Part shown: in pieces, positions 39,499-58,500 of the stretch | Layout of the letters: each line of letters opens with the position of its first letter | Numbering within the stretch: position 1 is the first letter of the stretch | Source: Histomonas meleagridis 2922-C6/04-290x | Taxonomy: Eukaryota > Protista > Parabasalia | DNA length: 64,000 nt | Direction: 5' to 3' | Assembly (NCBI GenBank): GCA_020184695.1 | Contig: JAANOX010000151.1 | Span: 1-64,000 of the forward strand | Notes under the pieces: generated by a model | Told to the model about the DNA's origin: nothing | The model's input: only the letters and a program-made list of their open reading frames with translations | Databases searched by the model: none | Translations under genes and position numbers: made by a program

Positions 39499-42400
39499 CT
39501 ATAGAGCTCCTGAAGCCATGTTAAACAAAACATTCCATTTTTCTTGGAATTCATTTTCATCGTATTCATCATTGGAGTCCATAATTCTTTGTTTCATTAA
39601 ATCCAAATCATTTTGTAATTGTCCATCGCCTTTAGTTCCAACTGTTTTTGCTTGTATTGCTTCTTCAAGTAATTTGTAATTTTCGATAAATTGTTGATAT
39701 GTCGAAATATTTCCTATTTCGTTTAACGCATCTAAATCTTTTTTCATTAGAGAAACTTGTTTCTGTTTTACATCTGGCGCATTAATTAAATATGTTTCGT
39801 TAGGACAACTTCTGCTATATGGTGCGCCTACTGATAAATTAACTTCATTACTTTTATTGTTAATTAAATATGTGGTAACATGTTTAAATTTGATTTTGTT
39901 TGCTTTCATTTTTTCATCTCCTGCTTGTACAGTTTCGAAAGGAACTTCTCCATCAGTAACAATGATTAAATGATCATGATAATTTTCACCTGCAGTAACT
40001 ACTATATCTGCAATAAGATCTGAATATGTTCCTTCATTACCATATTTATTATTCATAAAATCTTCCATTTGACTTCTTGTTTTTTCTTGAAGATGTTCTA
40101 AATTTGACCATATAAATATTTTATCGCCTGGTTTATATTCATTTTCGATAATTTTTCGGAGTTCTGAATGATAAAATATATTTCCGCGAACAGATCCAGA
40201 ACAATCGATTGCAAATAATCGATGTTTTATTATATCAGAAAATCCATTCCATTTGATACCCTCGTGAACTGTATAAATAACTGCTTTTGGACGCCAATAT
40301 TTAGGTTTAATATTTTTATCTCTGGAATGTACTTCAGGTCTTGCAGTCCATCCAGCAATATTTTGTATGTATTTAAATGTTCCATCTTTATTCATCTTAG
40401 TAAAACATTTTGTAAATCCACAATCAATTATAATATCGCCATAATCACATGTTACATGACTTGGATAAAATAATGAACTTATTCCACCAGATGAATCTCT
40501 AGAAAATGGAATAAATGGGCTCATCTTACTTTCATCTTGAACATATGAAATTGTAATTCCTTCAAATATTTTACCAAGATTATGAGCTAATGGAAATCTT
40601 TGAATTTCTTTAAATACTTTTGGATTTCGATTAAATGATTGTGGCTTTGATAATCCCCCTGTTTCATCACCAAATAATATTTTTCCTCCTTTATGTTCAC
40701 CGCCAATTCTTAATTCGGAACATTTATCTTCTAATTCTTTAAAGCGTGCTTTCTGAAGGAATAAATTTACTTGATAATGAAGTGGATCTCCTTCAGCCCA
40801 AAAGACAATTGAACCGCCATTTTGCCAATACAAAATTAATACATCAATAAATTGTCCAACTAAATTTGGATCTGCATGTGGATTATTTTGTTGTGGTAAA
40901 ATTGGATATGGCGGCCCACATATTACCCATGTAGCATAATAATCACAGAAACCTTGTGTAGTTTGTTTCGTTAATTCTTGTATTGCATCATAATAATTTA
41001 ATACAACTTTGATTTCAATACCAAAATATTCTACTGCTGTTTTAATACATTCAGTTTGACCATCCTTCGGCTCAAATATGTATTTAGGATTTACATATTT
41101 TTTCTCTTTTCCGCTTAATTCATTTGACCATAACATTACAATTAATATTTTTTGTCCTTCCAATAAATTTTTTGTATACATTTCGGTGTTCGGTCCTGTT
41201 GGATTTATAAATCCTTTTTCTGCATTTCCAACATCTTTTTCTTCATTATAAAAATCAGAAAATGCATCAAGTGTTGGTATGATATCATGAAGTTCTTTTT
41301 TAAGTTCTGAAAACGGTGATAAATTATTTTGATTTCGTATTAAATCTTCAATTATTTTATGCATTTCCATTTGATTAGGTTCAGAACCATGAATAAGACG
41401 TATTTCATCAAGTTTATCTAATGAATCATCACTAAAAAGTGATGCAATTGTTCTTAATAAAGACAATGGATTTGGTGAATAAACAACTTGAGAAAATAAG
41501 TTTTCAATTCCTTTTGGATATATTCCAACACCTATACCAATTGTATTAATACCATATTGAACACATAAATTAACTTCTTCAATAATTAATTTTCGTTCAT
41601 TTTGTTGATATAATCCATCTGTAATGATAAATAATAAACTTGAATGATCTGTAGATTGTAATCTTTTTAAATCAAATGCTGTATGAATAGCTGATGCTAA
41701 ATCGATATTAGTTTTAGGATTTTTTAAAATTGAAAATAAAGATTCCCAAAGTGGTGATTTTATATTTAATGCTTCAAATGTATTAATACCTGAACATAAA
41801 ATGTTTGGTGCTGGTGATCCTGCAATAATTAAATTGAAACATGGTAAATCAATATTTGTTAATATTGATAAAAGATTTCGAATTGTTTGTATAGTATGAG
41901 CTTCAGAAAGTTCATTAAAACATGAAATAGATGGATCAATAATAATGGTTACATCATAATTACGTTTTAATCCTCCTTTTTCTACTAAATATATTAAAGG
42001 ATCTGGAACAGGATTTAATATATTTAATATTAATGCTGTAATATCAAAATCAGTACCTGTCGATGATAATACTGATTGTGATGCTTTATTTGGTTTAAAC
42101 ACGGTTTCTAATGATGAATTATGAATTCTTTTGATTTCTATAAAATCATGAAGAAATGTTTCAAATTCTTTTTTATCATTCATCTTTGATATTGAAATAA
42201 TTTTGTTAGTTTTGTTTCGATAATGTGACATTTCTAATTGATTAACGTGATTATTAACGGTATTTAAAACATTTGTTCTTCCCGAATAAATACCTTCTAA
42301 TTTAGTAAAATCTACATTTTTTAAAAGACTTTCAAAATGATTTATATCTTTTAATTCTGGTATATCTTCTGGTATTTCTGCAAGTGTAATTTCTTTATAC

Positions 42401-45400
42401 TTAGGAGGTAATTGTTGACTTTCTTTACGTTCCATAACATCAGCAAACATGTTCAATAATGAATTATCAATTTCTTCATTAAATTCGGCTTGTATTGGTG
42501 TTACTATGATTAGTGATTGTGCTTTATATTCTTTCGTTTCGTTTTCAAAGTTATGCCATTTTTCTTCAATAAATTCTAAGTTTTCTCCTTTGAGTTGTTT
42601 CGATTTAATAAAAATAAATCCATATGAAAAATTAGGATTTGATAATAACTTCGCCCATACTTTTGTCCGAACAAGATTTTCATCAATACCATCAGTAAAT
42701 GTGAAAAATGCTACATTTGGTCTTGTTTCAAGAATTGATTTTGGAATAGAATCTATAGCAAATTGAACGGAATTAATTAAATTAGTTCGATATCGTTTAA
42801 TTAAGATACAATCTAAAATTCTTTGTAATATAATATATGAATGATTTTCTTCAAATGATTTAATAACACATTTAAATCTTTCGTCTGCAATTAAAATTAC
42901 TGAATATGGAATTTCCATTGAAGAAAGTGCACATGTTAATGCACAAATAATTAACATATTAAATATTTTATTTTCATCTGATATAAATGAACTACAATCA
43001 ACTAAAATATTTGCACATATATTCGAATATGGAATTGTACAATCTGATGCTACTTTAACGAATAAAGAACTTAAATAATAACTTTGTTGAATAAGATCTT
43101 TTATAGTATAATTATTTGATTTCGGTATTAATAATTCATTTCTTATATTATATCCATTTGATTTCTGAATTACATTATCTTCTTCATTCTCCATACTTTT
43201 CATACGATTAATTACCCTTTCAATTCCATCCATTTCAGTAAATTGTGAAGTAATTCCATCAAATTGTTCAGTTTCTATTCCACCTTTTGTGGTTTTTTGA
43301 TTATCATAGATATAAAAATCTTTTCCTGAATCATTATTTTCATTATTTTCGTTTATATCTTCAGATTCTTTTTCTTTATTTATTACATTTTGATTCTCAT
43401 TTATAATATTTTTATAATTAATTTCACTAAATTTTTGAATATTTTGTTGTTCATATACAATTGAATTATCATTTTCTTTCTTTTCCTGAATATCAAGTAA
43501 TTTACTTTCAAATTTACTTTCTGTTCGTGTTTTCGTTTCAGTAACAAATAATTCATTTGAATTAAATATATTAATAGCTTTCGTATCATATTTCTGTTTT
43601 TCGGTATTTTCCCAATTTCTTTGTTCAATGAAAATTGGTTTCTTTTGAGGTAATTGAATGAATTCTTTTGATATTCTTCTTGACGCTTTAATTACTTTTC
43701 GCGGTAAATTAATTTGACTAAAGTCAACACCTGCTCGACTTAATTTACTCGTAGTTAATTCAAATGATTCACTAAAATCATTTATATAAGGTGATAAAAA
43801 TGAGTGATCTTTTAATGGAAGTTCGCGATATATTTGTGTTAATTTTGAAAAATATTCTTGTGTTGATTTAAGATCCACCGTCTTCGAAGACATCTTTAAG
43901 TTTCTAATATGAATAGGAAGGACTTTTGCACCTTGAGTACATGTTTGATAAAATTGTATTAAAGAAGAAATCGTTTCATTATTTGAATCTTCTGGTATTG
44001 AAATTTTTGGTAATTCAATTTGAAGTTCATTAGAATCAATTGATGTGTCTTGATTTATTATTATTGGCTTTATAATATCTCGTTCATCGAAATTATCCTT
44101 TTTCTCAGGTTTCTTAAATTCAGTAAGAAGGTAACATTTCGATCTTGAATCTTCAGTTGGAATTTGTGTTAATAACTGTTTCTTTTCATTATAATCACGT
44201 TCTATATACACATTTCTATTGTAAATGATTGTATCGCTATTATTTATGGCACTTTGTTTGATTTCAAAATACTCATTACGAAGTTTTTGCATTTCTTCTT
44301 TAATTTGTTCATTTGATGGTGCTTGATATAACATAAAGTTTCTTTTTTCTAAACTTTCGTATCTTTCTTTAAAAATCTTATAAAATTTAAATATATAATT
44401 ACATGCATATACTTTTAAGATTAAATCTTTTTTCTGAATTCCTTTTGGAATTGAAAACATATTCTGATTTTGTAACATTTCTTGAAGTTCATTTGGTAAT
44501 ATTTTGATTAAGTTATATATATTATACATTTTCTTTCTAGTTTTCAGAATTAACATAAAAATGAAATTTGAAAAATCTCTTTTTCTTAATTGAACATTCT
44601 TCAAATCAGTGTATTTTTTAACAGCAAATTGACTTTTTATCTTTGTTAATATTTCAGTTGCTTTTTCAATGTTTTCATTCTTTGGTTCTAATTCATCCAA
44701 ATCTTGATCAATTTCAGGATAAATTGTAAATGCAGGGAACCATTGTTCTTTCTTATCAAAACCGATTATAGGAAAATAATCATGATTGAATCTTTTGTAT
44801 TGTGGATCATTATTTTTTTCATAGGAACCTTCTTTACATCCATGAACATAAGTGATTTCTCCCTTAGAAACGTTAATTATATCATCATTGTAGGAAATCT
44901 TTGGATTTGTTTCTAACTCAAAACCAAAAGGTGTAATTAAACAAGATACTTTAGTGAGATCTAGTTGGTTATTTATTGTTATTTTTTCCCATTTTTCTTC
45001 ATAAAATGCTAAAATAGGAAATCTTTTCATTATATCTTCATCTAATTTTTTGTTGTAAGGTATAATGTTCTTTGTATTTCTTGAATCTTTAGAGTAGAGA
45101 ACACTTTTTGGTGCTTCTTGGAATTTTACGTATATCATTTTTTTCATGTTACGTGATTCTATCATAATATAATATTTACAATTTGAATTAGAATTAACAT
45201 TGTTTAGATTTTGTGGATCTATTTTTATTATTATGTCAAAATCAAATTTTTGTTGAATAAATATTTCTGGGATTACGGGAATGTTGGTGCCATATGGTAA
45301 ATTACAATCAAAATTCCCATTTTGCTTTCCAATCCAAAGTTTACTTAAAATTCTGCAACGTAATTGAAATTCTTTAACTTCTTCAGAATAATATAAGATC

Positions 45401-48400
45401 AATTCTTTATCAGCAAACTTCTTGTTTGAAAAATCATAAATTTCGAATTTGAAATCAAATGGAACCAGCAATAAATCCATATGAATACAAATCTCTAAAT
45501 TTGCTGAAAATTTCAAATAAAAATTACAATGGAATCGAGACATTTTAGATGCTGAAGGAAGCTTAATCGTTACTTGATCTTCATTTGGTTCTATTTGTGG
45601 TTTATCAGATGTATTACCTTCGAGACTTTCTATATTTGTTTCATAATTCATTTTTTCTTCAAGATAATAATTTTTGAATTTAAATGTAATCGTTGAATTT
45701 GTTAAAGCTTCTTGACAACATAATTGATATCTTCCATCTTTATATGATAAATCATATTCTTCACATTTAATAAGTAATGATAATGGAACAAGAATAAAAT
45801 TAAATTTACATGGAAGAATTAATTCATTATATGTTTGCGATGTAAAATGAATTTCAGTTTGAATTTCGATTTCTGTTTTATCATTGTTTATAAGTGAAGG
45901 AAATGGTACTGGAAGATGAACGACTTCTCCTCGTTTAATATTATAATTAGCGTTGAAAATATCTGAATATTCTTCTTGATTAGTTATAACATTAATTGAA
46001 AATGATTTATCAATAAATGAAATAAAATTAATGAAAATTTTTTCTTCATACAATGATGGTATTATTGGGCCAATTGGACAATTAAGCGACTTAAAACAAC
46101 AGATAATTTTATTATTCGAAGAAACACTTAAAATGGGAATAGAAAAGAAGTTAGAATCAGCAATATTTCGAAATGATGGAATATTTTTCTCTGATATTAA
46201 TGATGGAAATGGAATATTATAAAGAATAGAAAACATTTTCGGTAATTTATTTTGATAAACATCATTCCAATATTTTTCAACATCATTGATAATATTTATA
46301 AAATTATCAATATAACCAAGAAATTGATCTAATGTTTCGTTAAGTTTGCTAATTTCAGTCTGGATTTCAGCTTTATAATTTGACGAATCTAAAATGATGA
46401 CATTTGAATTTTGGAGTGCTTTTATAGATTTATACAATTCTCTTGGAATAGCTAAAATAGTTTCGTTCAAATTTTCTAAATTTTCAAAAGCATTAAATAA
46501 ATCTTTTATAGATCTCATTTTTTGTTTAAATTCTACGAGAAGTTTTGTAAATTCACAGCAATTGTAAGAACCTATAAAAATTTGGGGGTCAAATTGTTTG
46601 AAAGATTCATTAGGAAAGAATTCCTCATAATTAATATTTTCAGCAATTGGATAATATTCTGATGGGATATCTAACAGATCAGTGTGACATGGAATAGTCT
46701 TAATTAATGTTTTTTTATTTGAAGAACTTTTATCAAATAATTTATTGTATCCTTTAATTGCTTGATATGCTTTATCTATGTTTGTTTGTAATATTTTATC
46801 GTCTGGCATATTAAATAATTTCTCATAACTTGATACCTTTTTTTTTAATTCTTTGATTTTTTTATTTCTTTCATTTTCATAGTGTTCTTTCTTTATATTA
46901 TTCAATGCTTCAGCAATAGTCTGAGTAAAACTTTCAACAAATTTAGGGAAATCACTTTTTTGCACTTCAAGAAATTCTAATAGTTTAATTGATGGTTCTT
47001 TAGTTTTAATCTCCTTAAATTTATTTATTGTATTTATCTTAATTTTTTCTTTAACATATTTATTTGGATCGATTATAAATTTTAATGTTTCATTTTTAGA
47101 ATTCGTTTTTGAATTAATAATATCATTAATATTATTATCAAAAGTCAAATTTACAATTTCATTAATAAACTCTTTAATTATGTTATGTTTTTGTTGATTT
47201 AAAACTTCATTTAATTTGATATTATCTTCTGATAAAGAACGCCATAAACTATAAAGTAATCCTATATCTTGATCAATAAATTCATGAGGTACTGCTGATA
47301 GCAAAAGATTTAGCCATTTAGTTCCAATTTCCTGATTATTTAATCTTTCTTTTATTTTTTTTAATATTGATTTATGTAATTCTTCACTAATGATTTTGTT
47401 TGTTGTTGTTGGATTGTTGAAATCTAAAGAAATTATATTAATTGGAGAGATAAGTCTTAAAACAAAAATCCAAAATGGCATTTTATTTTTTTGTGATTTA
47501 ATTTTGTTAATTTGAGATGAATAAAGCTTTTGAAGTTGTTTTGCACATTTTTGATTTCTGCATAACCAATAAATTAATGATGGATTCTTATTAATATATT
47601 CTTTATTCTTCATCCAATTATCTTCAAGAAATATAATATCAGGAAACTCAAGTTGATATTCTTGAATGTTATCAAATCTTTCTGCAATTTCAAACATATA
47701 TAAAATGGATGAAAGAAGTTCTTGTTCTGAGTCTTTTCTGTCTGCTACTTTTTCTCGAATTGATTCTTTAAATTCGAAAATATCATTTGGTGCTTGGAAG
47801 TTAAAATCATATAAATTACGATATATTGATTTAGCAACCTCGATAGCACATTTGGAAAATTTCCTGAAATTTTGATGGCGAATGAATTTTAATGAATCAA
47901 TTATTTCGTTTTTATTACAATTTTGTATAAATAAACCATTTTGTACTTCATTTTCATTGATGAAGTTAATAAACATAAAAATAAGATCCATAGGTTTAAA
48001 TTTTGGTAAAATAATTTCAAAGTTAATTTCAGTTTTTCTTCCAATGTCATGAGCCCATTTAATTTCACCTTCTGTGACTTCGTTTCTATTTGCAAGATCA
48101 TTTAATATTTTATCAAGCTTAAGGATTTCTGAGTCTACATTATCTTGATGCATTTTATATAGAAATGCAGCATTTAATGTAGAGCTTATTATATCAAAAT
48201 CAGTATCTTTCATATTTCCATTGGAATTTGGATTATTGAATATGCAACTAATTAAATATTTATGAACAGATTCCATTTCTGGAAATTCATTTAAATCCAT
48301 TATTGTTTCAAATATATTGGAATTATTTACATCAATAATTTCCATAAATTTCCTGTGGATTTTAGAATACCATACAATATTTTCATAAATTTTCATTTGC

Positions 48401-51400
48401 CTTGTGTTTGTTCCATTTGTTGATCCTAATGGTGTATATGTTGGCCATTCAATAGAATGAAAGTTAAGTGATTCACCATGTTTAATATATTCTAAAAGTT
48501 TGTTTACCATTCGTTCACATAATTTATAATATTTCTCTGTTATATTTTGATCAGAAACATTAATAAGTCTTGTAATTATTTGATCTTTTATTGATTTGAT
48601 TTCTCGATTTTGAATTTCAATATCTTTAAGCTTTTCACTAAGACTTTCAATATTACTTCTAATTAATTTTTTTTCATCATCTTTACAAAATTGAATAATC
48701 AATTCTTTTAATGGAATCTTTGATTTTTCTAAAAGTTGTATATAATCATTTGGATTCCAAAATGTTTTATCAACATTGTTAATAATCTTTATCTCGTTTT
48801 CGATTTGTGAAATTTCATTTTTTGCATCTGTTTCATTCATAATTTGTCTATGTTCATAAAAATTAATTTTAATTCTCCATAAAATTGAATTTGGACTTCC
48901 AAATGAAATAAGTGATTTTGTAAAGTCAATTATTTTATTTAAATTTTCATACGTTTCGATTTTACTTAATATTATTGAAAGATCATTAAGTATTTCTGAT
49001 TCAAGTGGGTGAAGATATTTTATCAATTTTTGTATATCTTCTGATGAAAATGTATAAATCAAAGTCCATAATTTACTTATCATTGGTGTTTGTTGATGTT
49101 TTTTAAAATACAAATTGAATAATAATGATAAACTTCCAAATTGATTCTTTCGAGGATTTTCTGCTCCACTTTTGATATATTTATTTGCTGATTCTTTAAT
49201 ATTATCCTCATTCATTCTAAGTTGATTTAAACTAAATTCTTTGCATAACATATATGTTGCTTGATTTAATTTTTCATAAAGATCTGATCCAATATTATTA
49301 TTATTATTTATGAGTGATATATATTTTTTACCATAATTGATTTTTGTTTGTGGTGAAAGCAATAAAGAATTCTCTTCATTAAATACAAAAATTGGGTTAA
49401 TTTTATTTTTTAAATTCTTATAATTAAATTTATATGTTTTTCCTTTAATTTCGATTGAAAAATGTATCTTTTTTTCATGTAATATTCTGATTAATGGTAA
49501 CCAATAGCAAATATATTGAAAAGATGTAGAAATAAACTTATTGTATGGGAAAATACTTTCAATTGTAGGTATTAATTTCTTATTCTTCTTTAAATTAGAA
49601 ATAAATTTATCAAATGTTTCAAGTTTTTGTTCATTTGCCATCTCATCAATAATATTAATAATATTAAACATACCTTTTCTAATTAATTCAAATGGAATAT
49701 ATTTCGTGAAATATGAATCTTCTTCAACAAGTTTTGTTAATAAATGAAATCTTAAAATTGGTTTTTGAATACTTTCATATGAAAGTAAATCTTCATCTTG
49801 AAGTTTATAATTTGAAATGGTTTGAACCCTGATTTGCTTGAATCCTTCCATTATTTCTTCAAATATTTTGTAAATTATATTAATTAGATAAAACTTTCCA
49901 CAATATAATTTGGTTTCATCTTTTCTAATTTGTTTCTTATTGATAAAATTATTTATCATTTCTATTGTTTTCTTTATGTGTTTTTGAATTGATTCAATAT
50001 CATTTATTTGAATAAATTTACAATTTTTAACAAAATTATTAAATAAGAAATTATCAAATGGTGTTTTGTTTCGAATATACATTTGAATTTGGCGGATAAA
50101 TTCAAGAATTTCTTTACAACGCTCTTTTAAATTTGATGAATCTATAGATTTAATTAAATTTTGTGATGGATTATTTGCAAAATAATCTATTAAATCATTT
50201 TGAAATTGTAGTCTTTTATCTCCTTGATCAATAAGAGAATTACAATAAATTTTTATTGATTTACAAATCGGAAGATAAATATCTCTAATATAATTTTCTT
50301 TATTTTCTTTTTGTTGTTGAATGAAATTTAATATAATATATTTTAATGTTCTACCTGTAAATGTAATATCTCCTGCAAATAAATCACGATTATTATCACT
50401 TACATGTTTTGCAAATGAATGCATAAGTGCCATTCTTGCTCCAATTTGAATAGAAAGTTCTGGATATAAATTTTTAACTAAAGAACCATATAAAATTTGT
50501 GCTGAATATTCTTCTCTTGAATCAATTTGTGGAAGTGTAAATGAAACACATTTATTTAAGAAAGATTGATCAATCATTTTATTTTCATTCGTTGATGTTG
50601 GATTATAGATTATAATTAAACGAAAATCTTTATGAATTGGCTTTGAATTAGGTTTTCCATTCTTTGTGAAATAATAATCTTGTCCACATTCATATAGATT
50701 AAGTTCTGGATCATCACCACATAAAGAAGAAATTTTTTCTGCGATAACAGTTGGTGCAGATTCTATTCCATCAATTAAAATTATTTCGCCATTTTGAATA
50801 GCTTTAACAATAGTAGAATCAACATGATGAAATCTATTTGCTGGTTGAATAACATTTTTAATATCTCTTACTGCTGTTTGAATAAAGTTTTGCTTATATT
50901 CATCAAAATCTTTTAATGAATTTTTTTTAATTAATTCAAGAAGATCTTTGAAAATTTTTGGTGTCCAATATTTAGGATTTTCATTAATGTTTTCCTCAAT
51001 ATATTCTTTAAATTGATCAAATTCAGAAAGTTTCGCAATTGTTTGTTTTAATAAATGAATATCCTCCCTTGTTAAAGAATTATCAAGAATAGATTGACCT
51101 ATTAATGCAGAAATTCCTGTGTCAGCATTCATTTGATATACATTTAATTTCCTTCCAATCATTTTAGTAAATAATCGAACAATATGTGATTTACCTGATG
51201 CAGTATTTCCTTGTATAACACATGCACGATTTGTAAGATAAGAAAATGCTAAAAATAATAAACAATGTTTTTGTGCTAATGTAAGACTTTTAATATTTGC
51301 TTGAATTTCTTCTTGATTAATATTCTTTGTTTCTATTGGAATTTTAATCACATGCTTATTATCTCCTGTTAAACAAATTATTAATTCATTTGAATCATAT

Positions 51401-54400
51401 TTAAAAACAGGATTAAATTTCATATCTTTCATTTGAAGTGATGTTAAAACTTGTTGAATATCTTCTTCTTGTGTAAAACGATATGCAAATATCATTTGTG
51501 ATATAATTATTTTTTTAAAACATTTATATGTAATATTCCTAAATAAAATATATTTTGATATATCATTCAATGTTAAGTTTTGATTTAAATTAAATTTATT
51601 ACATATGCGATTCGTTTTCAAAAAATATTCATAGAATTTAGATGCTTCATTACAAAATTGATATGTTGAAAATTGTTTCGCAATAATATTAGAAATATCT
51701 TCTTTTGTTGGATTGAAAACAATATGATAAATCGATGAAATAATAAGTGATGAAGGTAATCTATAACGATTAGAAAATCCGTTTTGTGGATCAAAAATAG
51801 CTATAAGATTCATTTCTCCTTTATCGATAGTTGTGCCATTTGGTAATAAAACATGTTTCTGATTCGTATCAAAAATATTTACCATTAATTCTAATACTGC
51901 TGGTGATGCATTATTTATATTATGAAATACTATAATAATTTTTGTTTCATTTGATTTTATAGCTTTAACAAGTTTGGTTTCAATCATATTAACATGAATT
52001 TTGTTTTCGTTATCTCTATTAATAGTTATTCTTCCTAATAAATCATCAACTTTTGTAGATTGTGAAATAATTATATTAACAACTTCATAACCTAAACTAT
52101 TTCCAATATAATTAATCGCTGTTTCTTTACCTTGACCTGGTTGGCCTTCAAATATGACTGGAATATGTGTAAATATCCCTAACTGTAAAACATCAAGCAT
52201 TTCTGTAAATTTGCCGGTAAATTCAATATTTCGATTGTTCGTACTTTTAATAAATAATCCTGTAATTTTCGATTTTAATCCTTGATATCCATTCTCTTCG
52301 CATAAAATAAATGGATTTTCATTAAAATCTTCTAATAATTCTGGTAATTTTATCTTTAATTTAAATAATTCGAAAAGTTTTTCCCTTTGTTTTTGATGCT
52401 CTAGTAAACCTGAACATAAACGATAAATAATCAATCCAAGATTAATTGATACTTTAGAAGAATTTGTTTCATGAGGAAATTTATTTAACATTTCTATAGC
52501 TTTAAGCATTTGAGGAAATGTAAATTGCTTTTGGAATTTTTCTTCAAATTCAGTAGAAATGTCTTGTATAAAATCAATTTCTAGATCACTACATTTTAAT
52601 TTATTGATTCTTATGTAATTTTTAAGAACTGATTTTTGTTCTTTCTGTTGATATTCTGGAACTGAAATAACTGTAAAACGTGATAATACTGCTTCTGAGA
52701 GTTTAACTGGGGAATTCGCTGGACATGTAGCAATAATTCGAAAACTTTGATTAAAATCTGTTATTTCTTTGTTTTTTTTACTCGTAAATGTGTTGTGAAT
52801 ATCTTCATTTAATGTTAAATTATGATTCCCTGATAATAATTCGTTAAATCTTTCTAAAACAATTGTTGGAAGATTAGATAAATTTTTTAATATTAGTGAT
52901 TTCCTTTCAAGGATTGCTGTTAAAAATAATCCTGGTCTAAATTCAAGTGTAATGTTTGAAATAACACAATTGTTTTCCTTTTCTTTTGCAAAAAGCTTTT
53001 TAATTAAATGATTAACTGCATATTTAAATGATTTTGGTATAATATTCATTATATCTTTTATAAGATCTGTAATATCTTTTTCTTTAAGTGTTTTATTTAA
53101 TAATTTATTTTTAAGTTCTTGATATTTATTTATTTGACATATTTTACATATATTTTCTAAATAAAATAATCTTGATTCAATATCTGTAAAGAAGCTGGAT
53201 GATCCAAGTAATTGTGATATTGTTGTTTCTTGATTTAATGTAATTACTTTGGCTTCCATTAAAAATTGTTGTGCTAAAAATGTCTTAAATCCTGAATTAC
53301 CCATTAATAATATTGGCTCTGTTATATCAGATAATAATAATTTAAAAGCACAATTTAATAAAGATTTATGCTTTTTAGTTAAACTTTCGGTTTTCATTTT
53401 TGAAGGAAATACTTCAAATGAAATTCCCGTATTTCCTTTCATAATAAATGATTCTCCATTTATTTTAGTTATTGTAGGTTTTGATATATAACAATTCTTT
53501 AATTCTTGACGCTTATCTTTAATTGAAAATTCGCCAACAATCAAGTTTAATATATCATCTATTATTTTATCTATTTCAATATCACTAACTGGTGATAATG
53601 TATAAAATAAAATATGATGATAAAATGTTAAATTTTGATAATAATTTTCTGGATTCATATCTTGTCGATGAATACGAATAAATAATTTAGTAATATCACG
53701 AAGTGACCATTGTGGGATAATATTTTGTTTTAATTTATTTAATTCAATCATATATTCACCAATACGTTTTGCATTTTCTTCATTAATTAATGTAGGTTTC
53801 GCATCTTTATAACAACTATTTAAGATTTCAACACAAATATTTGAAATATCTTCCTTTTCTTGTTTTGGATATGTAAAATATCTAAATCTAGATGAAATAG
53901 AATCTGGAATTGCATTGCGACCAATAGTACCAAGTTCATTTTGACATGCAATAAAGAAGAATTCTTCATTAAAAGGTATAGATTCTCCAACTCCTGATAT
54001 AAATATTCTCTTTCCTTTACTTGGTTCAAGAGCTGGTGCTAGTGATTTCATACATTCTGATGAGGATAAATTCATTTCATCTGCAATAAATGTTAAACCT
54101 TCCATCATTGATAAAGTTAATGGTCCATCATAAAAATAAACTTTCCCTTTTTTAATTGTAGTTGTACCATAAAAATGACTTGGCTTAGTCCCTGAATGAA
54201 ATGAATGCATTTGAAATCCATTTTCTCTTTCGGATTTAATTGGACGAATTTTAGAAAATGCTCTTGCAGCTGATGTTTTACCTGCACCTGTAGGACCTGA
54301 AACACATACAGGTAAACCAATAAGTGATGCTGCATATATTTTCGCTATAAATTCACTAAGAGGTTTAGAATTTTTAAAAAAGAACTGATTATCATCAGAT

Positions 54401-57400
54401 TCTTTTAATTCATGAATTAAATATTCTCTAATGGTTTCATTGAGTTGAAAATCTTCTGTTCGATTTAACATTTGAACTGAAAATTTGATGATTTCTTCGG
54501 GGCTAACAAATTCTTTTGGAATTGTTTTTGAATATTTTGATACAGCTTTGCATAAAAAAGCAAGTTGTGAAATATTCATTTTATTTTGTGAAAAATACTC
54601 ATATGTAAGATTAACAATTTCATCTGATGGTTCATATTCTTGAGATTTTATAGTTGATGAATCGTGTTGAGGTTCATCTTCATTAACATTTGATTCATTT
54701 AAATCTTGTGTTGAAATTTCACTTTCTTCTTCATTATATTCATATTCACTATCATAACTTCCATTGTTTTCATCATCAGAATTTTCAGAAGATTTATTAC
54801 TTGAAGTTTGAGAATTTTCTTCATTTTCTTTATTTTCATTGTTTTGATTTGAAATAATAATCTGATATAATTGATTTTCATCCTGATTATTTTCATTATC
54901 GTCTTGTTGTTTATTGCGATTATAACTGTTCATTAAAATTTTAATTAATTCTTTTTGTTCTTGTTCTGTTAATCCTTCTAATTGATCTTCAAGTACAATT
55001 ACATCAAATCTATTAAGAAAAGCTGGTGAAATTAAATGAATTTTTTCTATATCACATGTACATATTAATTTAAAGTTTGGATTAATTAAAATTTGACTTT
55101 CTTGTGGATTTTCTGGTATATAAAATATTTTATCCTTTCCATCATATTTTTGATCAAGAAGACTATTTAAACGTTCTGTAACTGTAGCTGGTGCTTCATC
55201 AATAGAATCAAGAATAGCACAATTTCCATTTTTAATAGCTTCCGTTAAAAATCCTGGTTTCCATGTGATTAATTCTTGATCTGCATCTGCGTTCTCAATT
55301 GGCTTTTGTTTACCAATTAAATCAGAACATTTTGTTTCGTCTGTACAAACACAGAAAAATTCTTTGGTGTTATTTTGTTTTTTATTGTCTTTTGTATCAT
55401 AATATTCTGAAACCCATCGTGCTAATTGCGTTTTACCACATCCTTCTCTTCCAGTTAAAATTACATGTCGATGATTTTTAAATGAAAACATTATTGATTT
55501 TAATGTAGTACTTAATGTTTTATTATGAAAACATTGTGGAAAATCTGGTGGATATTCAAATTTTTTAATACTATTTGATCTTAATGAATTATATCCGTTA
55601 AGTTTTGTTTCAAGTTTTTGTCTAATATTTTTTTGATATCTTGCTCCGTATATTGTCATAATAGAATCATGTATATTTTCATCATCTGCAATCGCTCGAA
55701 TTGTAGCTGCAATTTCGCGAATAGTAAAACATTGAATGTCCTTCAAAACTTCTCCTTCTTTTTGCCATGTCATATGAAAATCAACAAGTTGTTGAATAAT
55801 ATATTCCGAGTTAACGTTTAAATTAAATCTTTTCGCTAATCCTTGACCTATTTTCAATAATTCATCTTTTGTAAATGATGGAAAATTAATAATTTGAAAT
55901 CGTGATAAAAATTTTATTCCTAAATCTTGTCTTTTGTTCGCAAATAATCCTTTATTAGGATTTTGTGTTGCAATAAGTCGAAATTCTGAATGCATTTTTA
56001 TCTCTTTTAGTGGCATTCCTGAAATTTCAACACTTATAACACCACTATCAAGTGCTTCTTCAATACATTGTAATACTGAAGGTGATGCTAAATTAATTTC
56101 ATCTAATAATAAACATTTACCTTCTGAAAATGCTTGTAAAAATGGTCCTGCTTTGACCGTAATCCCTGACCATGAATTGGGTTCACCAACATATCTCCCT
56201 AATAAATCACTTGTTTTAGTTTCTGAACTTAAATTAAAGCGAATCATTTCTTTATTTAATAATTTACAGACAACTTCTGCACTCAGTGTTTTAGATGTTC
56301 CTGTCGGTCCTTCAAGTAAAACTGGAATTCCTATTGATAAACAATCATAAAGTTTTAATAGACGTTCTTTCGCTCCTTCTGTAAATATAAAGTTTTGCTT
56401 TATAAGTTCTTCTTTTTCTTTTTCTCCAAACTCAAATTGTGTTTGAAGATTTATATTTTCTTTGATTTTTTCAATAATAGAATCAATATCAATTTCTTTC
56501 TCATCAAAATATGGATCTGATAGTAAATTAAATTCTTCTGAATTTTCTTTATCATTATTATCGATTATATCATCAATATCATCTTCTTCTTGGGGATCAT
56601 TATTTGATGTTAATATTTCATTATCTTCATTAAATATAACCTGAAGATATTTAATAGCACTTTCATTGTTTTTTCTTGCTGCTCTTTGTAAATATTTAAT
56701 CCCTTCTGCTTTTTTCTTTGGAAAATTTCGTCCTTCATAAAGTTCAACACCAAAATAATACATATCTTCAGCATCTCCTTCATCTGCATGCCTCTTTTTA
56801 TCTATAAGTTCTTGTGTTAAAACATTTTGATATGCCTTAATTTTCATTATATATTTTTGATAATTAATTTCATCTTGTACTTGAGTTTCTTTAGAAACAT
56901 TTTGAAGTATTGCTTTGATTTCAGAAAATGTTGGTCTTGAAGTTGGTTCTGTTGATAAGCATTGTTGAATAAGAGAATAATATTTATCAATAGAAATAGT
57001 AATAAATGGAACTGTAAATTGTGAAATTGATTGATATAATTCTTCTTCTTCAATACCATTAACTAAAAATATTTCAAAATTCATTGTAAGAAGTTGTAAC
57101 ATGATTATTCCAAATGAATACACATCTGATTTTTGCGTGTAATCATTAGAACGAAGAATTTCAGGTGCCATATAAATTAGAACTTTATCATCTTCGTGAT
57201 TTTGATAATCATTGGGAAAAATTAAATAATACATCAGATCTGTAATAATTGGCTCAAAATTATCATTTAGAAAAATATTGAATGATGTTAATCGACCATG
57301 AATTAAGTTTGCTTCATGTAACGACTCCATAAAAGAAGATATTCCTAATAATATTTTATTGAAGGGATTCCACCCTTCTGGAATAAATCCGTTCTCGAGA

Positions 57401-57696
57401 ATTTTTATAAAATTATATAAAGAACCATTTGAATAAAACGGTGATAAAATATAACCATCTTTTGATGGTTCAGGTTCTGAGATATGAACAATACGTCCAA
57501 TATATTGATGAGTAAATTCATTGTATTTATTATATATTTCTTGAAATGATGTAATTCCTTGAGGAATGGTTCTCAGAACGAATTTATCATCTGTAAGTTT
57601 GCTTTTAAACATCAATGTTTTGGATTGACTGCTATTATGATTAGTTATTTCTTGTATTTTCTCATACTCATTCAGATATTCGTCTTGAGCTAACAT
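39499..57696 (-). CDS. Giant 6065-aa protein: pseudokinase - SEL1 - six tandem midasin-type AAA+ modules - long linker - vWA - vWA - alpha/beta domain - vWA
   Basis: Kinase-like YMAPEIL and KSDVYSFG. SEL1-like MYYFGVELYEG. Walker A motifs at about 56300 (GPTGTSKT), 55440 (GREGCGKT), 54285 (GPTGAGKT), 53290 (GNSGFKT), 52135 (GQPGQGKE) and 51200 (GNTASGKS). vWA motifs VDCSS/FTDG, IDPSIS/ITDG and IDCSGS/VTDG. Confidence 0.9.
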   Translation of the reverse strand: MLAQDEYLNEYEKIQEITNHNSSQSKTLMFKSKLTDDKFVLRTIPQGITSFQEIYNKYNEFTHQYIGRIVHISEPEPSKDGYILSPFYSNGSLYNFIKILENGFIPEGWNPFNKILLGISSFMESLHEANLIHGRLTSFNIFLNDNFEPIITDLMYYLIFPNDYQNHEDDKVLIYMAPEILRSNDYTQKSDVYSFGIIMLQLLTMNFEIFLVNGIEEEELYQSISQFTVPFITISIDKYYSLIQQCLSTEPTSRPTFSEIKAILQNVSKETQVQDEINYQKYIMKIKAYQNVLTQELIDKKRHADEGDAEDMYYFGVELYEGRNFPKKKAEGIKYLQRAARKNNESAIKYLQVIFNEDNEILTSNNDPQEEDDIDDIIDNNDKENSEEFNLLSDPYFDEKEIDIDSIIEKIKENINLQTQFEFGEKEKEELIKQNFIFTEGAKERLLKLYDCLSIGIPVLLEGPTGTSKTLSAEVVCKLLNKEMIRFNLSSETKTSDLLGRYVGEPNSWSGITVKAGPFLQAFSEGKCLLLDEINLASPSVLQCIEEALDSGVISVEISGMPLKEIKMHSEFRLIATQNPNKGLFANKRQDLGIKFLSRFQIINFPSFTKDELLKIGQGLAKRFNLNVNSEYIIQQLVDFHMTWQKEGEVLKDIQCFTIREIAATIRAIADDENIHDSIMTIYGARYQKNIRQKLETKLNGYNSLRSNSIKKFEYPPDFPQCFHNKTLSTTLKSIMFSFKNHRHVILTGREGCGKTQLARWVSEYYDTKDNKKQNNTKEFFCVCTDETKCSDLIGKQKPIENADADQELITWKPGFLTEAIKNGNCAILDSIDEAPATVTERLNSLLDQKYDGKDKIFYIPENPQESQILINPNFKLICTCDIEKIHLISPAFLNRFDVIVLEDQLEGLTEQEQKELIKILMNSYNRNKQQDDNENNQDENQLYQIIISNQNNENKENEENSQTSSNKSSENSDDENNGSYDSEYEYNEEESEISTQDLNESNVNEDEPQHDSSTIKSQEYEPSDEIVNLTYEYFSQNKMNISQLAFLCKAVSKYSKTIPKEFVSPEEIIKFSVQMLNRTEDFQLNETIREYLIHELKESDDNQFFFKNSKPLSEFIAKIYAASLIGLPVCVSGPTGAGKTSAARAFSKIRPIKSERENGFQMHSFHSGTKPSHFYGTTTIKKGKVYFYDGPLTLSMMEGLTFIADEMNLSSSECMKSLAPALEPSKGKRIFISGVGESIPFNEEFFFIACQNELGTIGRNAIPDSISSRFRYFTYPKQEKEDISNICVEILNSCYKDAKPTLINEENAKRIGEYMIELNKLKQNIIPQWSLRDITKLFIRIHRQDMNPENYYQNLTFYHHILFYTLSPVSDIEIDKIIDDILNLIVGEFSIKDKRQELKNCYISKPTITKINGESFIMKGNTGISFEVFPSKMKTESLTKKHKSLLNCAFKLLLSDITEPILLMGNSGFKTFLAQQFLMEAKVITLNQETTISQLLGSSSFFTDIESRLFYLENICKICQINKYQELKNKLLNKTLKEKDITDLIKDIMNIIPKSFKYAVNHLIKKLFAKEKENNCVISNITLEFRPGLFLTAILERKSLILKNLSNLPTIVLERFNELLSGNHNLTLNEDIHNTFTSKKNKEITDFNQSFRIIATCPANSPVKLSEAVLSRFTVISVPEYQQKEQKSVLKNYIRINKLKCSDLEIDFIQDISTEFEEKFQKQFTFPQMLKAIEMLNKFPHETNSSKVSINLGLIIYRLCSGLLEHQKQREKLFELFKLKIKLPELLEDFNENPFILCEENGYQGLKSKITGLFIKSTNNRNIEFTGKFTEMLDVLQLGIFTHIPVIFEGQPGQGKETAINYIGNSLGYEVVNIIISQSTKVDDLLGRITINRDNENKIHVNMIETKLVKAIKSNETKIIIVFHNINNASPAVLELMVNIFDTNQKHVLLPNGTTIDKGEMNLIAIFDPQNGFSNRYRLPSSLIISSIYHIVFNPTKEDISNIIAKQFSTYQFCNEASKFYEYFLKTNRICNKFNLNQNLTLNDISKYILFRNITYKCFKKIIISQMIFAYRFTQEEDIQQVLTSLQMKDMKFNPVFKYDSNELIICLTGDNKHVIKIPIETKNINQEEIQANIKSLTLAQKHCLLFLAFSYLTNRACVIQGNTASGKSHIVRLFTKMIGRKLNVYQMNADTGISALIGQSILDNSLTREDIHLLKQTIAKLSEFDQFKEYIEENINENPKYWTPKIFKDLLELIKKNSLKDFDEYKQNFIQTAVRDIKNVIQPANRFHHVDSTIVKAIQNGEIILIDGIESAPTVIAEKISSLCGDDPELNLYECGQDYYFTKNGKPNSKPIHKDFRLIIIYNPTSTNENKMIDQSFLNKCVSFTLPQIDSREEYSAQILYGSLVKNLYPELSIQIGARMALMHSFAKHVSDNNRDLFAGDITFTGRTLKYIILNFIQQQKENKENYIRDIYLPICKSIKIYCNSLIDQGDKRLQFQNDLIDYFANNPSQNLIKSIDSSNLKERCKEILEFIRQIQMYIRNKTPFDNFLFNNFVKNCKFIQINDIESIQKHIKKTIEMINNFINKKQIRKDETKLYCGKFYLINIIYKIFEEIMEGFKQIRVQTISNYKLQDEDLLSYESIQKPILRFHLLTKLVEEDSYFTKYIPFELIRKGMFNIINIIDEMANEQKLETFDKFISNLKKNKKLIPTIESIFPYNKFISTSFQYICYWLPLIRILHEKKIHFSIEIKGKTYKFNYKNLKNKINPIFVFNEENSLLLSPQTKINYGKKYISLINNNNNIGSDLYEKLNQATYMLCKEFSLNQLRMNEDNIKESANKYIKSGAENPRKNQFGSLSLLFNLYFKKHQQTPMISKLWTLIYTFSSEDIQKLIKYLHPLESEILNDLSIILSKIETYENLNKIIDFTKSLISFGSPNSILWRIKINFYEHRQIMNETDAKNEISQIENEIKIINNVDKTFWNPNDYIQLLEKSKIPLKELIIQFCKDDEKKLIRSNIESLSEKLKDIEIQNREIKSIKDQIITRLINVSDQNITEKYYKLCERMVNKLLEYIKHGESLNFHSIEWPTYTPLGSTNGTNTRQMKIYENIVWYSKIHRKFMEIIDVNNSNIFETIMDLNEFPEMESVHKYLISCIFNNPNSNGNMKDTDFDIISSTLNAAFLYKMHQDNVDSEILKLDKILNDLANRNEVTEGEIKWAHDIGRKTEINFEIILPKFKPMDLIFMFINFINENEVQNGLFIQNCNKNEIIDSLKFIRHQNFRKFSKCAIEVAKSIYRNLYDFNFQAPNDIFEFKESIREKVADRKDSEQELLSSILYMFEIAERFDNIQEYQLEFPDIIFLEDNWMKNKEYINKNPSLIYWLCRNQKCAKQLQKLYSSQINKIKSQKNKMPFWIFVLRLISPINIISLDFNNPTTTNKIISEELHKSILKKIKERLNNQEIGTKWLNLLLSAVPHEFIDQDIGLLYSLWRSLSEDNIKLNEVLNQQKHNIIKEFINEIVNLTFDNNINDIINSKTNSKNETLKFIIDPNKYVKEKIKINTINKFKEIKTKEPSIKLLEFLEVQKSDFPKFVESFTQTIAEALNNIKKEHYENERNKKIKELKKKVSSYEKLFNMPDDKILQTNIDKAYQAIKGYNKLFDKSSSNKKTLIKTIPCHTDLLDIPSEYYPIAENINYEEFFPNESFKQFDPQIFIGSYNCCEFTKLLVEFKQKMRSIKDLFNAFENLENLNETILAIPRELYKSIKALQNSNVIILDSSNYKAEIQTEISKLNETLDQFLGYIDNFINIINDVEKYWNDVYQNKLPKMFSILYNIPFPSLISEKNIPSFRNIADSNFFSIPILSVSSNNKIICCFKSLNCPIGPIIPSLYEEKIFINFISFIDKSFSINVITNQEEYSDIFNANYNIKRGEVVHLPVPFPSLINNDKTEIEIQTEIHFTSQTYNELILPCKFNFILVPLSLLIKCEEYDLSYKDGRYQLCCQEALTNSTITFKFKNYYLEEKMNYETNIESLEGNTSDKPQIEPNEDQVTIKLPSASKMSRFHCNFYLKFSANLEICIHMDLLLVPFDFKFEIYDFSNKKFADKELILYYSEEVKEFQLRCRILSKLWIGKQNGNFDCNLPYGTNIPVIPEIFIQQKFDFDIIIKIDPQNLNNVNSNSNCKYYIMIESRNMKKMIYVKFQEAPKSVLYSKDSRNTKNIIPYNKKLDEDIMKRFPILAFYEEKWEKITINNQLDLTKVSCLITPFGFELETNPKISYNDDIINVSKGEITYVHGCKEGSYEKNNDPQYKRFNHDYFPIIGFDKKEQWFPAFTIYPEIDQDLDELEPKNENIEKATEILTKIKSQFAVKKYTDLKNVQLRKRDFSNFIFMLILKTRKKMYNIYNLIKILPNELQEMLQNQNMFSIPKGIQKKDLILKVYACNYIFKFYKIFKERYESLEKRNFMLYQAPSNEQIKEEMQKLRNEYFEIKQSAINNSDTIIYNRNVYIERDYNEKKQLLTQIPTEDSRSKCYLLTEFKKPEKKDNFDERDIIKPIIINQDTSIDSNELQIELPKISIPEDSNNETISSLIQFYQTCTQGAKVLPIHIRNLKMSSKTVDLKSTQEYFSKLTQIYRELPLKDHSFLSPYINDFSESFELTTSKLSRAGVDFSQINLPRKVIKASRRISKEFIQLPQKKPIFIEQRNWENTEKQKYDTKAINIFNSNELFVTETKTRTESKFESKLLDIQEKKENDNSIVYEQQNIQKFSEINYKNIINENQNVINKEKESEDINENNENNDSGKDFYIYDNQKTTKGGIETEQFDGITSQFTEMDGIERVINRMKSMENEEDNVIQKSNGYNIRNELLIPKSNNYTIKDLIQQSYYLSSLFVKVASDCTIPYSNICANILVDCSSFISDENKIFNMLIICALTCALSSMEIPYSVILIADERFKCVIKSFEENHSYIILQRILDCILIKRYRTNLINSVQFAIDSIPKSILETRPNVAFFTFTDGIDENLVRTKVWAKLLSNPNFSYGFIFIKSKQLKGENLEFIEEKWHNFENETKEYKAQSLIIVTPIQAEFNEEIDNSLLNMFADVMERKESQQLPPKYKEITLAEIPEDIPELKDINHFESLLKNVDFTKLEGIYSGRTNVLNTVNNHVNQLEMSHYRNKTNKIISISKMNDKKEFETFLHDFIEIKRIHNSSLETVFKPNKASQSVLSSTGTDFDITALILNILNPVPDPLIYLVEKGGLKRNYDVTIIIDPSISCFNELSEAHTIQTIRNLLSILTNIDLPCFNLIIAGSPAPNILCSGINTFEALNIKSPLWESLFSILKNPKTNIDLASAIHTAFDLKRLQSTDHSSLLFIITDGLYQQNERKLIIEEVNLCVQYGINTIGIGVGIYPKGIENLFSQVVYSPNPLSLLRTIASLFSDDSLDKLDEIRLIHGSEPNQMEMHKIIEDLIRNQNNLSPFSELKKELHDIIPTLDAFSDFYNEEKDVGNAEKGFINPTGPNTEMYTKNLLEGQKILIVMLWSNELSGKEKKYVNPKYIFEPKDGQTECIKTAVEYFGIEIKVVLNYYDAIQELTKQTTQGFCDYYATWVICGPPYPILPQQNNPHADPNLVGQFIDVLILYWQNGGSIVFWAEGDPLHYQVNLFLQKARFKELEDKCSELRIGGEHKGGKILFGDETGGLSKPQSFNRNPKVFKEIQRFPLAHNLGKIFEGITISYVQDESKMSPFIPFSRDSSGGISSLFYPSHVTCDYGDIIIDCGFTKCFTKMNKDGTFKYIQNIAGWTARPEVHSRDKNIKPKYWRPKAVIYTVHEGIKWNGFSDIIKHRLFAIDCSGSVRGNIFYHSELRKIIENEYKPGDKIFIWSNLEHLQEKTRSQMEDFMNNKYGNEGTYSDLIADIVVTAGENYHDHLIIVTDGEVPFETVQAGDEKMKANKIKFKHVTTYLINNKSNEVNLSVGAPYSRSCPNETYLINAPDVKQKQVSLMKKDLDALNEIGNISTYQQFIENYKLLEEAIQAKTVGTKGDGQLQNDLDLMKQRIMDSNDEYDENEFQEKWNVLFNMASGAL

Positions 57697-58500
57697 TTAA
57701 AAAAAATGCCAAACATCACAACAAAGCTTAACGTACCATGACATAGCCACTTTTACCGATATACTCGCATTCAAAAAGTTACAGTGTCAAAATAATGTAC
57801 GATTAAAATCAATTGAAAATATCGAGAATTAACTAAATATTTGCTAGCGAGTATATACTCAAAAAGTGCATTAGTGACAAAACTAGAAGGTGCATTTACA
57901 AGTGAAAATCTTTAAATTTTTTAATTGAAACAAATTAGACTGGCTTGAAAAACTTGTAGACTGACAACTTAATATAGCCCACGCCTACAATTTGGCATTA
58001 TTCGTAGAGAACATTTATTAATATATATTTAATAGTTTTTTTCGATTTAATTTTGTAATTTTCGCAATATTCCTATTTTCACTCACTTCACCATTTAAAG
58101 TTAACACTAAAAAATCTTTTTTCTCGGTTTTCTTTGCTTATTTGAATTAATTCATGTTTTTGGGACTAAATATATGCATATAGAATTAGAAAAAGCTAGT
58201 CCATGCTTGGAGTTCTTTTTGAAAGAATTGGGCAAAATCATATTAAATGCATAAAACGAACTTTTTATATTAGACGTGTTTGGCCGATAGACTTCAACGA
58301 CCGTTATACAATGGAACTTTTTGAAAATAACGATAGATATGGTTTGCTTACAAAAAGTCGTTTACATCACGCTGGGTCATTTAATGTCAAAAATTCCTTC
58401 TTTCATGGCATTAATATCAAAGCCTACTCGTGTGCCACTCGAATTGCTTGATTTAAATTTGCATGAATATCTCCAAATTATTAATCTAAAAAATAACATT

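Follow-up and report, generated by a model that had tools for sequence, protein, structure and literature searches.

We analysed a 64,000-nucleotide stretch of DNA (hereafter the window; assembly GCA_020184695.1, contig JAANOX010000151.1, positions 1 to 64,000) from the poultry parasite Histomonas meleagridis 2922-C6/04-290x, in which a single open reading frame (ORF) at positions 39499-57696 of the minus strand encodes a giant protein built around a ring of AAA+ modules. Reading of the frame from ATG to TAG verified the uninterrupted ORF reported in an initial annotation of this DNA: it comprises 6065 codons followed by the TAG, with no internal stop, and corresponds to an 18.2-kb single-exon gene encoding 6065 residues. 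Since an in-frame TAA adjoins the ATG directly on its 5' side, the frame cannot be extended upstream without an intron. The G+C content of the gene region is about 22-28% and, as stop codons are frequent at such a low G+C, the length of the ORF cannot be ascribed to chance. The product is collinear with the Tritrichomonas musculus protein P0133 over aa 83-6065 in a single high-scoring segment pair (HSP).

The integrity of the locus was assessed using DNA contigs from two separate samples, which tile positions 53281-58300 with zero mismatches; one of these contigs (56089-57833) covers the start codon, the kinase and Sel1 regions and the P-loop of the first AAA module. Contigs from RNA-labelled runs were collinear with the gene and gap-free (e.g. 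56383-57008 and 56204-547), providing weak evidence that the ORF is transcribed. An assembly chimera, which the initial annotation had raised as a possible explanation, or a decaying pseudogene merely resembling one ORF, might be suspected from the stretch at 52400-53187, which has no DNA contig coverage, and from the existing annotation: the protein collection lacks the 6065-aa product of the window gene, no full-length product occurs in the public annotation, and a paralogue is split there. Both explanations are nevertheless extremely improbable in the face of 6065 stop-free codons in AT-rich DNA, of motifs conserved over the whole length in 57 relatives, of the mismatch-free agreement between the two DNA samples, whose contigs tile the junction between kinase and AAA regions, and of a layout that recurs at another Histomonas locus and in Tritrichomonas. 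The ORF represents a true gene of H. meleagridis that lacks introns.

The encoded protein consists, in order, of a TKL-type pseudokinase, one Sel1-like repeat, six AAA_5 modules, a linker of about 2400 aa, two vWA domains (vWA1 and vWA2), an amidotransferase-like domain, a third vWA domain (vWA3) and a helical end. All nucleotide positions of these features given below refer to the minus strand of the window. The kinase domain extends over aa ~20-275 (56872..57639), with the Pfam family PK_Tyr_Ser-Thr (PF07714) matching aa 49-263 at an E value of 1.8e-24 and with Lck and Abl as the best PDB matches, in agreement with the N-terminal kinase fold proposed at first. Its HRD motif reads HGR, and the catalytic HRD Asp is absent from all kinase-bearing sequences aligned (13 of 13). 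The beta3 Lys of Lck aligns to Arg42 of the window protein and no Gly-rich loop was found in the alignment of the kinase-bearing relatives; the DFG Asp and the catalytic-loop Asn are retained. The term pseudokinase, already used in the initial annotation, is justified by the loss of the HRD Asp, the lack of a Gly-rich loop and the replacement of the beta3 Lys by Arg42. The Sel1-like repeat is single, as had been suggested, and lies at aa 312-344 (56665..56763); its Pfam score is sub-threshold in the window protein (E 0.27) and rises above threshold in the relative P0015 (4e-7). Judged by these motifs, the protein starts with a TKL kinase that is catalytically dead and is joined to a Sel1 repeat, a combination found in one clade of the family. 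The same kinase and Sel1 cassette occurs in stand-alone TKL kinase and Sel1-repeat proteins of Parabasalia and Mucoromycota, and the nearest clusters of the head in a language-model Atlas are kinase and Sel1 families from these two groups, which we consider a lead only. In contrast to the stand-alone proteins, the kinase-bearing members of the present family all lack the catalytic Asp, and in the window protein one Sel1 repeat is left and the cassette is joined to an AAA ring.

The ring region was examined by Pfam, by an iterated hidden Markov model (HMM) and by motif alignment. Pfam located six AAA_5 matches and the iterated HMM returned exactly six modules, confirming the number originally predicted. 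AAA1 (aa 441-625; 55822..56376) shows a variant P-loop, GPTGTSKT, and an intact Walker B DE. AAA2 (aa 729-926; 54919..55512) has an intact P-loop, a Walker B reading DS, which lacks the Glu, and no helix-2 insert, and AAA3 (aa 1114-1294; 53815..54357) is intact in both P-loop and Walker B DE. In AAA4 (aa 1454-1695; 52612..53337) the P-loop, GNSG-FKT, is one residue short, the Walker B reads KN and an insert is present. AAA5 (aa 1830-2012; 51661..52209) is degenerate, with GQPGQGKE and HN at the two motifs, and AAA6 (aa 2142-2395; 50512..51273) combines an intact P-loop with a Walker B DG and an insert. This pattern is conserved in 39 of the 39 family members scored. Family-wide, the P-loop reads GPTGT[SA]KT in AAA1, is intact in AAA2, AAA3 and AAA6, is one residue short in AAA4 and shows GK[QHE] in AAA5, and the corresponding Walker B motifs are DE in AAA1 and AAA3, DN or DS in AAA2, KN in AAA4, HN in the degenerate AAA5 and DG in AAA6. 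A complete Walker B is therefore confined to AAA1 and AAA3, and AAA4 and AAA5 are degenerate. Since AAA2 and AAA6 keep the P-loop and have lost the full Walker B, they probably bind nucleotide without hydrolysing it. The best PDB match of the ring was midasin (1.9e-51), followed by CbbQ and NorQ, and matches to the Pfam dynein families were weak (AAA_7 at 35.3 bits against a cut-off of 25.8; AAA_6 under its cut-off).

The linker returned no Pfam match over its ~2400 aa. Its first part (aa ~2420-3853; 46138..50439) is conserved within the family only, with 19-25% identity. An AlphaFold2 model of aa 3650-4849 (predicted local distance difference test, pLDDT, 72.8) showed helices, then tandem beta-sandwiches at aa 3854-4330, helices again and a disordered region at aa 4700-4816. 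The initial description of a linker of approximately 2500 aa, helical and then beta-rich, was thus close in length and correct for the helices that precede the sandwiches in the model, and has to be extended by the helices that follow them. About four tandem immunoglobulin (Ig)-like beta-sandwiches of ASH/MSP type are recognised here by AlphaFold2, Foldseek and the structural aligner VIA (44707..46137). The top Foldseek matches were ciliary central-apparatus proteins and the VIA scores were modest, with Z 7.7 for the VAP-A MSP domain and Z 7.0 for CEP192 SPD-2. A helical segment (aa ~4340-4655) and the disordered, mildly acidic segment (aa ~4700-4816), assigned from the model and from composition, occupy positions 43102..44706. 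No long region rich in Asp and Glu (D/E) was found ahead of the tail, where the most acidic 100-aa window contains 24% D+E.

For the tail, aa 4866-6065, AlphaFold2 returned a confident model (pLDDT 88.7, predicted template modelling score 0.72), whose fold matches bear out the three vWA domains and the additional alpha/beta domain that had been proposed. As single-sequence Pfam scans of the tail sub-domains gave sub-threshold vWA matches only, these assignments rest on structure models and family profiles. vWA1 (aa 4866-5093; 42418..43101), defined by model and motif, carries an incomplete metal ion-dependent adhesion site (MIDAS) motif, D-x-S-x-F/Y. Its closest structural matches were the MIDAS domain of human MDN1 (Z 19.9), that of Rea1 (19.7) and the NorD vWA domain (17.5), compared with about 15-16 for generic vWA domains. 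vWA2 (aa 5190-5423; 41428..42129) has an intact DxSxS motif and matched the CMG2 vWA domain at Z 16.2. When the family profile covered vWA2 together with the preceding segment, numerous canonical midasins were matched in their MIDAS domains (5e-9 to 1e-4); over the vWA2 stretch the profile reached 6qt8 at 0.019. vWA3 (aa 5826-5996; 39709..40221), supported by family profile and model and present in only part of the family, also shows an intact DxSxS, and its family profile matched integrin I domains at 1.6e-5. DxSxS is conserved in both vWA2 and vWA3, the MIDAS Thr and Asp positions being read by eye. Between these two domains lies an alpha/beta domain (aa ~5513-5804; 40285..41160) of the class-I glutamine-amidotransferase-like type (IFT52-N/GIFT, ThuA-like), for which VIA gave IFT52-N at Z 15.1, a ThuA-like fold at Z 14.2 and an oligosaccharyltransferase (OST) subunit at Z 14.1. 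It is the most conserved part of the tail, with a mean identity of 47% across the family. Its elbow Cys occurs in 38 of 46 sequences and is not invariant, and the fold matches are non-catalytic relatives (IFT52-N, ThuA-like). A three-helix end at aa ~6000-6065 (39502..39699) closes the model.

Relatives were collected by a length-restricted search, from which the best 120 of 195 matches were considered. Among these, about 66 were giant proteins of similar length with E values from 0 to 1e-206 (hereafter the giant family), and true midasins appeared in the same search at 1e-42 to 1e-59 only. Homology spans the full length, as assessed by BLAST and by an alignment of 57 sequences, with identities across the family of 36-51% in the ring, 19-25% in the linker and 30-47% in the tail. 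Named members among the matches listed belong to Tritrichomonas foetus (at least 2), T. musculus (at least 6) and the fungi Neocallimastix californiae, N. lanati and N. 'constans'. The same end-to-end layout was found in T. musculus and T. foetus, both of which have full-length collinear relatives, and in many gut metagenome contigs. The tail profile retrieved 329 representative proteins at E<=1e-30 out of 1.84 billion, and in these the match was C-terminal wherever the protein was long.

H. meleagridis itself has at least two copies. The second lies on WSYJ01000149.1 (reversed 1240603-1264574; frame at L001:1-13972) where at least 4656 codons follow one another without a stop; a single HSP aligns this frame with aa 1415-6065 of the window protein at 51.6% identity. 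This copy is annotated as a 1147-aa kinase and AAA piece upstream and a 1323-aa tail (GPJ56_006553), with about 9 kb unannotated between them. The initial annotation had proposed counting the paralogues and comparing their ends, and with at least two copies in Histomonas and at least six in T. musculus the ends do vary by clade: the kinase head marks one clade (support 0.994), and vWA3 is restricted to part of the family. The Neocallimastix proteins (P0001 and P0002, with cluster members P0121, P0123, P0147, P0149 and P0150) are the closest by identity, at 50%, and nest inside the kinase-bearing parabasalid clade (support 1.0), yet they lack the kinase and vWA3. This placement suggests that the ~18-kb gene may have passed from a protist to a fungus, the direction being a lead only. 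In N. californiae one copy is split into two adjacent gene models. Public databases list family members under the names 'hypothetical' or 'protein kinase domain-containing', and no description of the family, of its architecture or of the related lineage introduced below was found in the literature searched. The earlier statement that no described protein with this architecture was known therefore holds for the literature searched, and the architecture itself was already present, unnamed, in public databases. To judge from these searches, the family, which is multi-copy and occurs in gut protists and rumen fungi, appears not to have been described before.

The ring, linker and tail were then compared with midasin (Rea1/MDN1), the single-copy ribosome-assembly motor, whose ligands are the factors with ubiquitin-like (UBL) domains Rsa4/NLE1 and Ytm1/WDR12. 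Both midasin and the giant family place six AAA_5 modules of MoxR/dynein type on a single chain, carry inserts in AAA4 and AAA6 and continue through a long linker to a C-terminal vWA/MIDAS domain, to which vWA1 is related by structure (Z 19.9) and vWA2 by profile (5e-9). Residues 1120-2366 of the window protein are collinear with residues 1069-2264 of a yeast-type Rea1, covering AAA3 to AAA6. In a tree of the individual modules, odd and even modules separated in the giant family, in midasin and in a third group, the T-type lineage; this split in all three groups fits a six-module common ancestor. The differences from midasin are equally consistent. Walker B DE occupies AAA2-5 in 25-27 of 27 canonical midasins, midasin lacking it at AAA1 and AAA6, whereas in the giant family it is found at AAA1 and AAA3 only, in all 39 members, and the AAA4 P-loop of the giant family is one residue short, unlike that of midasin. 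AAA2 forms one unbroken HMM match in the window protein (198 aa against a 184-position model), in contrast to all midasins inspected, where it is split by an insert; in midasin the AAA2 helix-2 insert plugs the ring. The midasin lid and linker families of Pfam, PF17865, PF17867 and PF21108, occur in the precomputed lists of P0088-P0120, and none of them was found in the window protein (Pfam, E<=0.01) or in the precomputed lists of P0001-P0066. Finally, the giant family lacks a long D/E region, has three vWA domains and an amidotransferase-like domain in place of the single MIDAS domain of midasin, and adds the Ig-like domains of the linker, the pseudokinase-Sel1 head and multiple copies.

The T-type lineage comprises proteins of 5-8 thousand residues from Rotaria and Adineta (both auto-named 'Midasin'), Hariotina reticulata, Copromyxa protea and Prymnesium, that is, from bdelloid rotifers, a green alga, an amoeba and a haptophyte. 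Its members (P0067-P0087, P0091, P0101 and P0109) bear the automatic names 'Midasin' or 'MoxR-like ATPase'. Their Walker B motifs read DE at AAA1, AAA3 and AAA5, DN at AAA2 and DN or DG at AAA6, and Pfam recognises ASH, Cep192 (Cep192_D3), HYDIN and CFAP65 Ig domains, with 3-4 vWA domains behind them. With the giant family they share a Walker B of DN or DS in AAA2, an identical one-residue deletion in the AAA4 P-loop, DE in AAA1 (ED in midasin), the lack of an AAA2 insert and similar P-loop signatures in AAA2 and AAA6. ASH-type Ig domains between the ring and a multi-vWA tail are likewise common to both, being detected by Pfam in the T-type proteins and by the structure model in the window protein, and the family tail profile over the vWA2 stretch matched the T-type protein P0101 at 2e-24. 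The T-type proteins differ in an intact AAA5 (GPPGxGKT and DE, against GQPGQGKE and HN in the giant family), in a size of 7-8 thousand residues and in an N-terminal extension of 700-1200 aa that is not a kinase. Neither midasins nor T-type proteins were matched by family HMMs built for the linker (aa 2420-3860) and for the Ig/helical region, so that no sequence-level link between the T-type proteins and the giant family emerged in these regions. An hhalign comparison of the family tail with a rough T-type tail alignment gave no significant collinear match, a result that is uninformative because the T-type tails are too heterogeneous, and per-domain hmmsearch was used instead.

The tree of the ring modules of the giant family, midasin and the T-type lineage, which covers part of a comparison that the initial annotation had put forward, placed the giant family and the T-type lineage as sister clades in AAA1 (support 1.0) and AAA6 (0.999), apart from midasin. 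In AAA3 and AAA5 the T-type modules grouped with midasin; the branches of the giant family are very long there and a long-branch effect is possible. Since the sister grouping was recovered in only two of the six modules, we gave more weight to the shared derived motif states than to the tree alone. Two such states, the degenerate Walker B of AAA2 and the shortened P-loop of AAA4, are read as synapomorphies of the giant family and the T-type lineage, on which reading the Histomonas family would be a derived T-type branch that additionally lost AAA5. T-type proteins and midasin may be expected in the same organisms, as MDN1 is near-universal. A metagenome-derived protein, P0082 (6330 aa), showed six or seven AAA_5 modules at aa 2668-5156 with all P-loops and Walker B DE motifs intact, and fits neither the midasin, nor the T-type, nor the giant-family pattern.

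These comparisons bear on whether the giant family might simply be the parabasalid version of MDN1, canonical midasin having been lost and one member having taken over the removal of Rsa4/Ytm1-type factors from pre-60S particles. Midasin is indeed the nearest solved structure for the ring, and its MIDAS domain is the nearest to vWA1 by structure and to vWA2 by profile. No canonical parabasalid midasin occurred among the matches listed, an absence that is uninformative because these were only the best 120 of 195. A replacement of MDN1 is nevertheless very unlikely, given the Walker B pattern at AAA1 and AAA3 instead of AAA2-5, the missing AAA2 insert, lid domains and long D/E region, the multi-copy nature of the family, with two copies in one genome at 51.6% identity, and the grouping of AAA1 and AAA6 with the T-type lineage, away from midasin. 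The sequence evidence supports the view that the giant family comprises midasin-related paralogues and does not correspond to the MDN1 orthologue. The earlier idea of a midasin-derived paralogue, rebuilt, was right in so far as a paralogous relationship to midasin is concerned; the derived states shared with the T-type lineage indicate that it did not arise from midasin directly.

Taken together, we regard it as moderately probable that the giant family represents a separate lineage of giant single-chain AAA+ rings, sharing a six-module ancestor with midasin, whose members act as Rea1-like, ATP-driven MIDAS pullers. The tail offers two intact MIDAS motifs, in vWA2 and vWA3, and one vWA domain, vWA2, that is related to the midasin MIDAS domain by profile. 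In the mechanism we propose, the vWA/MIDAS array would use its bound metal ion to hold on to an acidic residue in one or several protein ligands, ATP turnover at AAA1 and AAA3 would remodel ring and linker, and the resulting force would extract the ligand from a larger complex or reshape that complex. The pseudokinase and Sel1 head, for its part, would not act as an enzyme and would contribute docking or regulation. Several points weigh against this interpretation. The P-loop of AAA1 is unusual, with Ser or Ala in place of the Gly that precedes Lys, and vWA1, structurally the closest to the MDN1 MIDAS domain, is the one with the incomplete motif. The linker shows no detectable likeness to that of midasin, so that force transmission may differ. 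The RNA contigs are of low depth and patchy, and could include DNA carry-over. Moreover, the pulling mechanism rests on the analogy with Rea1 and with MoxR-vWA systems.

The latter analogy concerns the bacterial pairs NorQ-NorD, RavA-ViaA and CbbQ-CbbO, which belong to the same AAA+ clade: CbbQ, NorQ and MoxR follow midasin among the PDB matches of the ring, and the NorD vWA domain is among the top structural matches of vWA1 (Z 17.5). They consist of separate small polypeptides with homohexameric rings, whereas the giant family combines six diverged modules in one eukaryotic chain. Proteins joining vWA and GATase1-like domains are common in bacteria, which is a lead only. Among eukaryotic machines, dynein and RNF213 likewise join six modules on one chain and hydrolyse ATP at only part of their ring sites. 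The site pattern of the giant family, centred on AAA1 and AAA3, recalls dynein; dynein has a stalk with a microtubule-binding domain, which is absent from the window protein, where about 135 aa separate AAA4 and AAA5. RNF213 differs by its E3 module, none being found in the window protein by Pfam scans.

The initial annotation had suggested a possible role in defence or surveillance, and a machine of this kind, similar to RNF213 or to the MoxR-vWA conflict systems, would sense invaders by its variable ends and set a threshold or disassemble foreign complexes through the ring. Inactive kinase domains are recurrent partners in bacterial MoxR-vWA ternary conflict systems (PMC7159879), and the giant family combines lineage-specific expansion and fast divergence with gain and loss of N- and C-terminal modules between clades. 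All its hosts inhabit dense gut communities, and the apparent transfer into Neocallimastix points the same way. We consider such a role unlikely, as no nuclease, protease, E3 or pore-forming effector appeared in any Pfam scan, the copy number is modest for an immune family, and conservation is highest in ring and tail, not in a hypervariable sensor.

The composition of the linker and tail raises instead the question of a remodeller or scaffold of the cytoskeleton, flagellum or centrosome, targeted by the ASH-type Ig and IFT52-N-like domains. The beta-rich region matches ciliary central-apparatus proteins best and resembles the CEP192 SPD-2 and MSP folds, Ig domains of the ASH, HYDIN and CFAP65 families are recognised by Pfam in the T-type relatives, and the amidotransferase-like domain resembles IFT52-N. 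Parabasalids and the zoospores of Neocallimastix are flagellated. However, ASH/MSP Ig folds are generic binding modules and were matched at a Z of only 7-8, the T-type lineage also occurs in Copromyxa, to our knowledge an amoeba without flagella, and no Trichomonas vaginalis member was present among the named matches listed. In addition, bacterial vWA partner proteins typically carry this amidotransferase-like fold, again as a lead only. A cytoskeletal role is thus distinctly unlikely in our estimate, and the MIDAS puller related to Rea1 remains our preferred interpretation.

On a wider and tentative level, the giant family and the T-type proteins together could represent a further lineage of single-chain hexameric AAA+ machines in eukaryotes next to dynein, midasin and RNF213, driven by its odd modules and characterised by several vWA domains in the tail and a linker of ASH-Ig type. 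One branch of it, in gut parabasalids, would have captured a dead TKL-Sel1 kinase, become multi-copy and passed horizontally to rumen fungi, a pattern that would fit conflict or surveillance and not housekeeping.

As for the remainder of the window, an intergenic stretch just upstream of the giant gene (57916-58112) showed a depth about 15 times that of its flanks in both DNA runs, contains loose ends at 58036-58091 and resembles a dispersed repeat. Genes for TMEM231, a protein of the ciliary transition zone, for the intraflagellar transport (IFT) protein CLUAP1/IFT38 and for TBCC were identified at 28431-32774 and 58501-59199, and the presence of these genes shows that the parasite retains transition-zone and IFT components. 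Further genes encode ankyrin/DUF3447 and RhoGEF-Kelch proteins, and the whole set fits a flagellated parabasalid. At 13080-14624 the window also contains an HSP70-like gene whose product, of 514 aa, lacks the C-terminal lid. Divergent HSP70-like proteins form a set of at least nine named members in H. meleagridis, 43-60% identical, to which this product belongs, and apart from itself its best matches are all paralogues of this species.

Single-chain six-module AAA+ rings are rare, and dynein, midasin and RNF213 are each a distinctive machine. The giant family and its wider lineage show a different set of live ATP sites together with a multi-valent MIDAS tail, and offer a natural comparison for the co-evolution of ring-site usage and tail design in Rea1-like pullers. 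The lineage is auto-annotated as 'midasin' or 'hypothetical', is fragmented in at least one genome annotation and is apparently missing from the literature searched. Its recognition adds a large protein family of parasite lineages to a poultry pathogen of poorly known biology, and may provide a record of an ~18-kb gene having moved between protists of the gut and anaerobic fungi.

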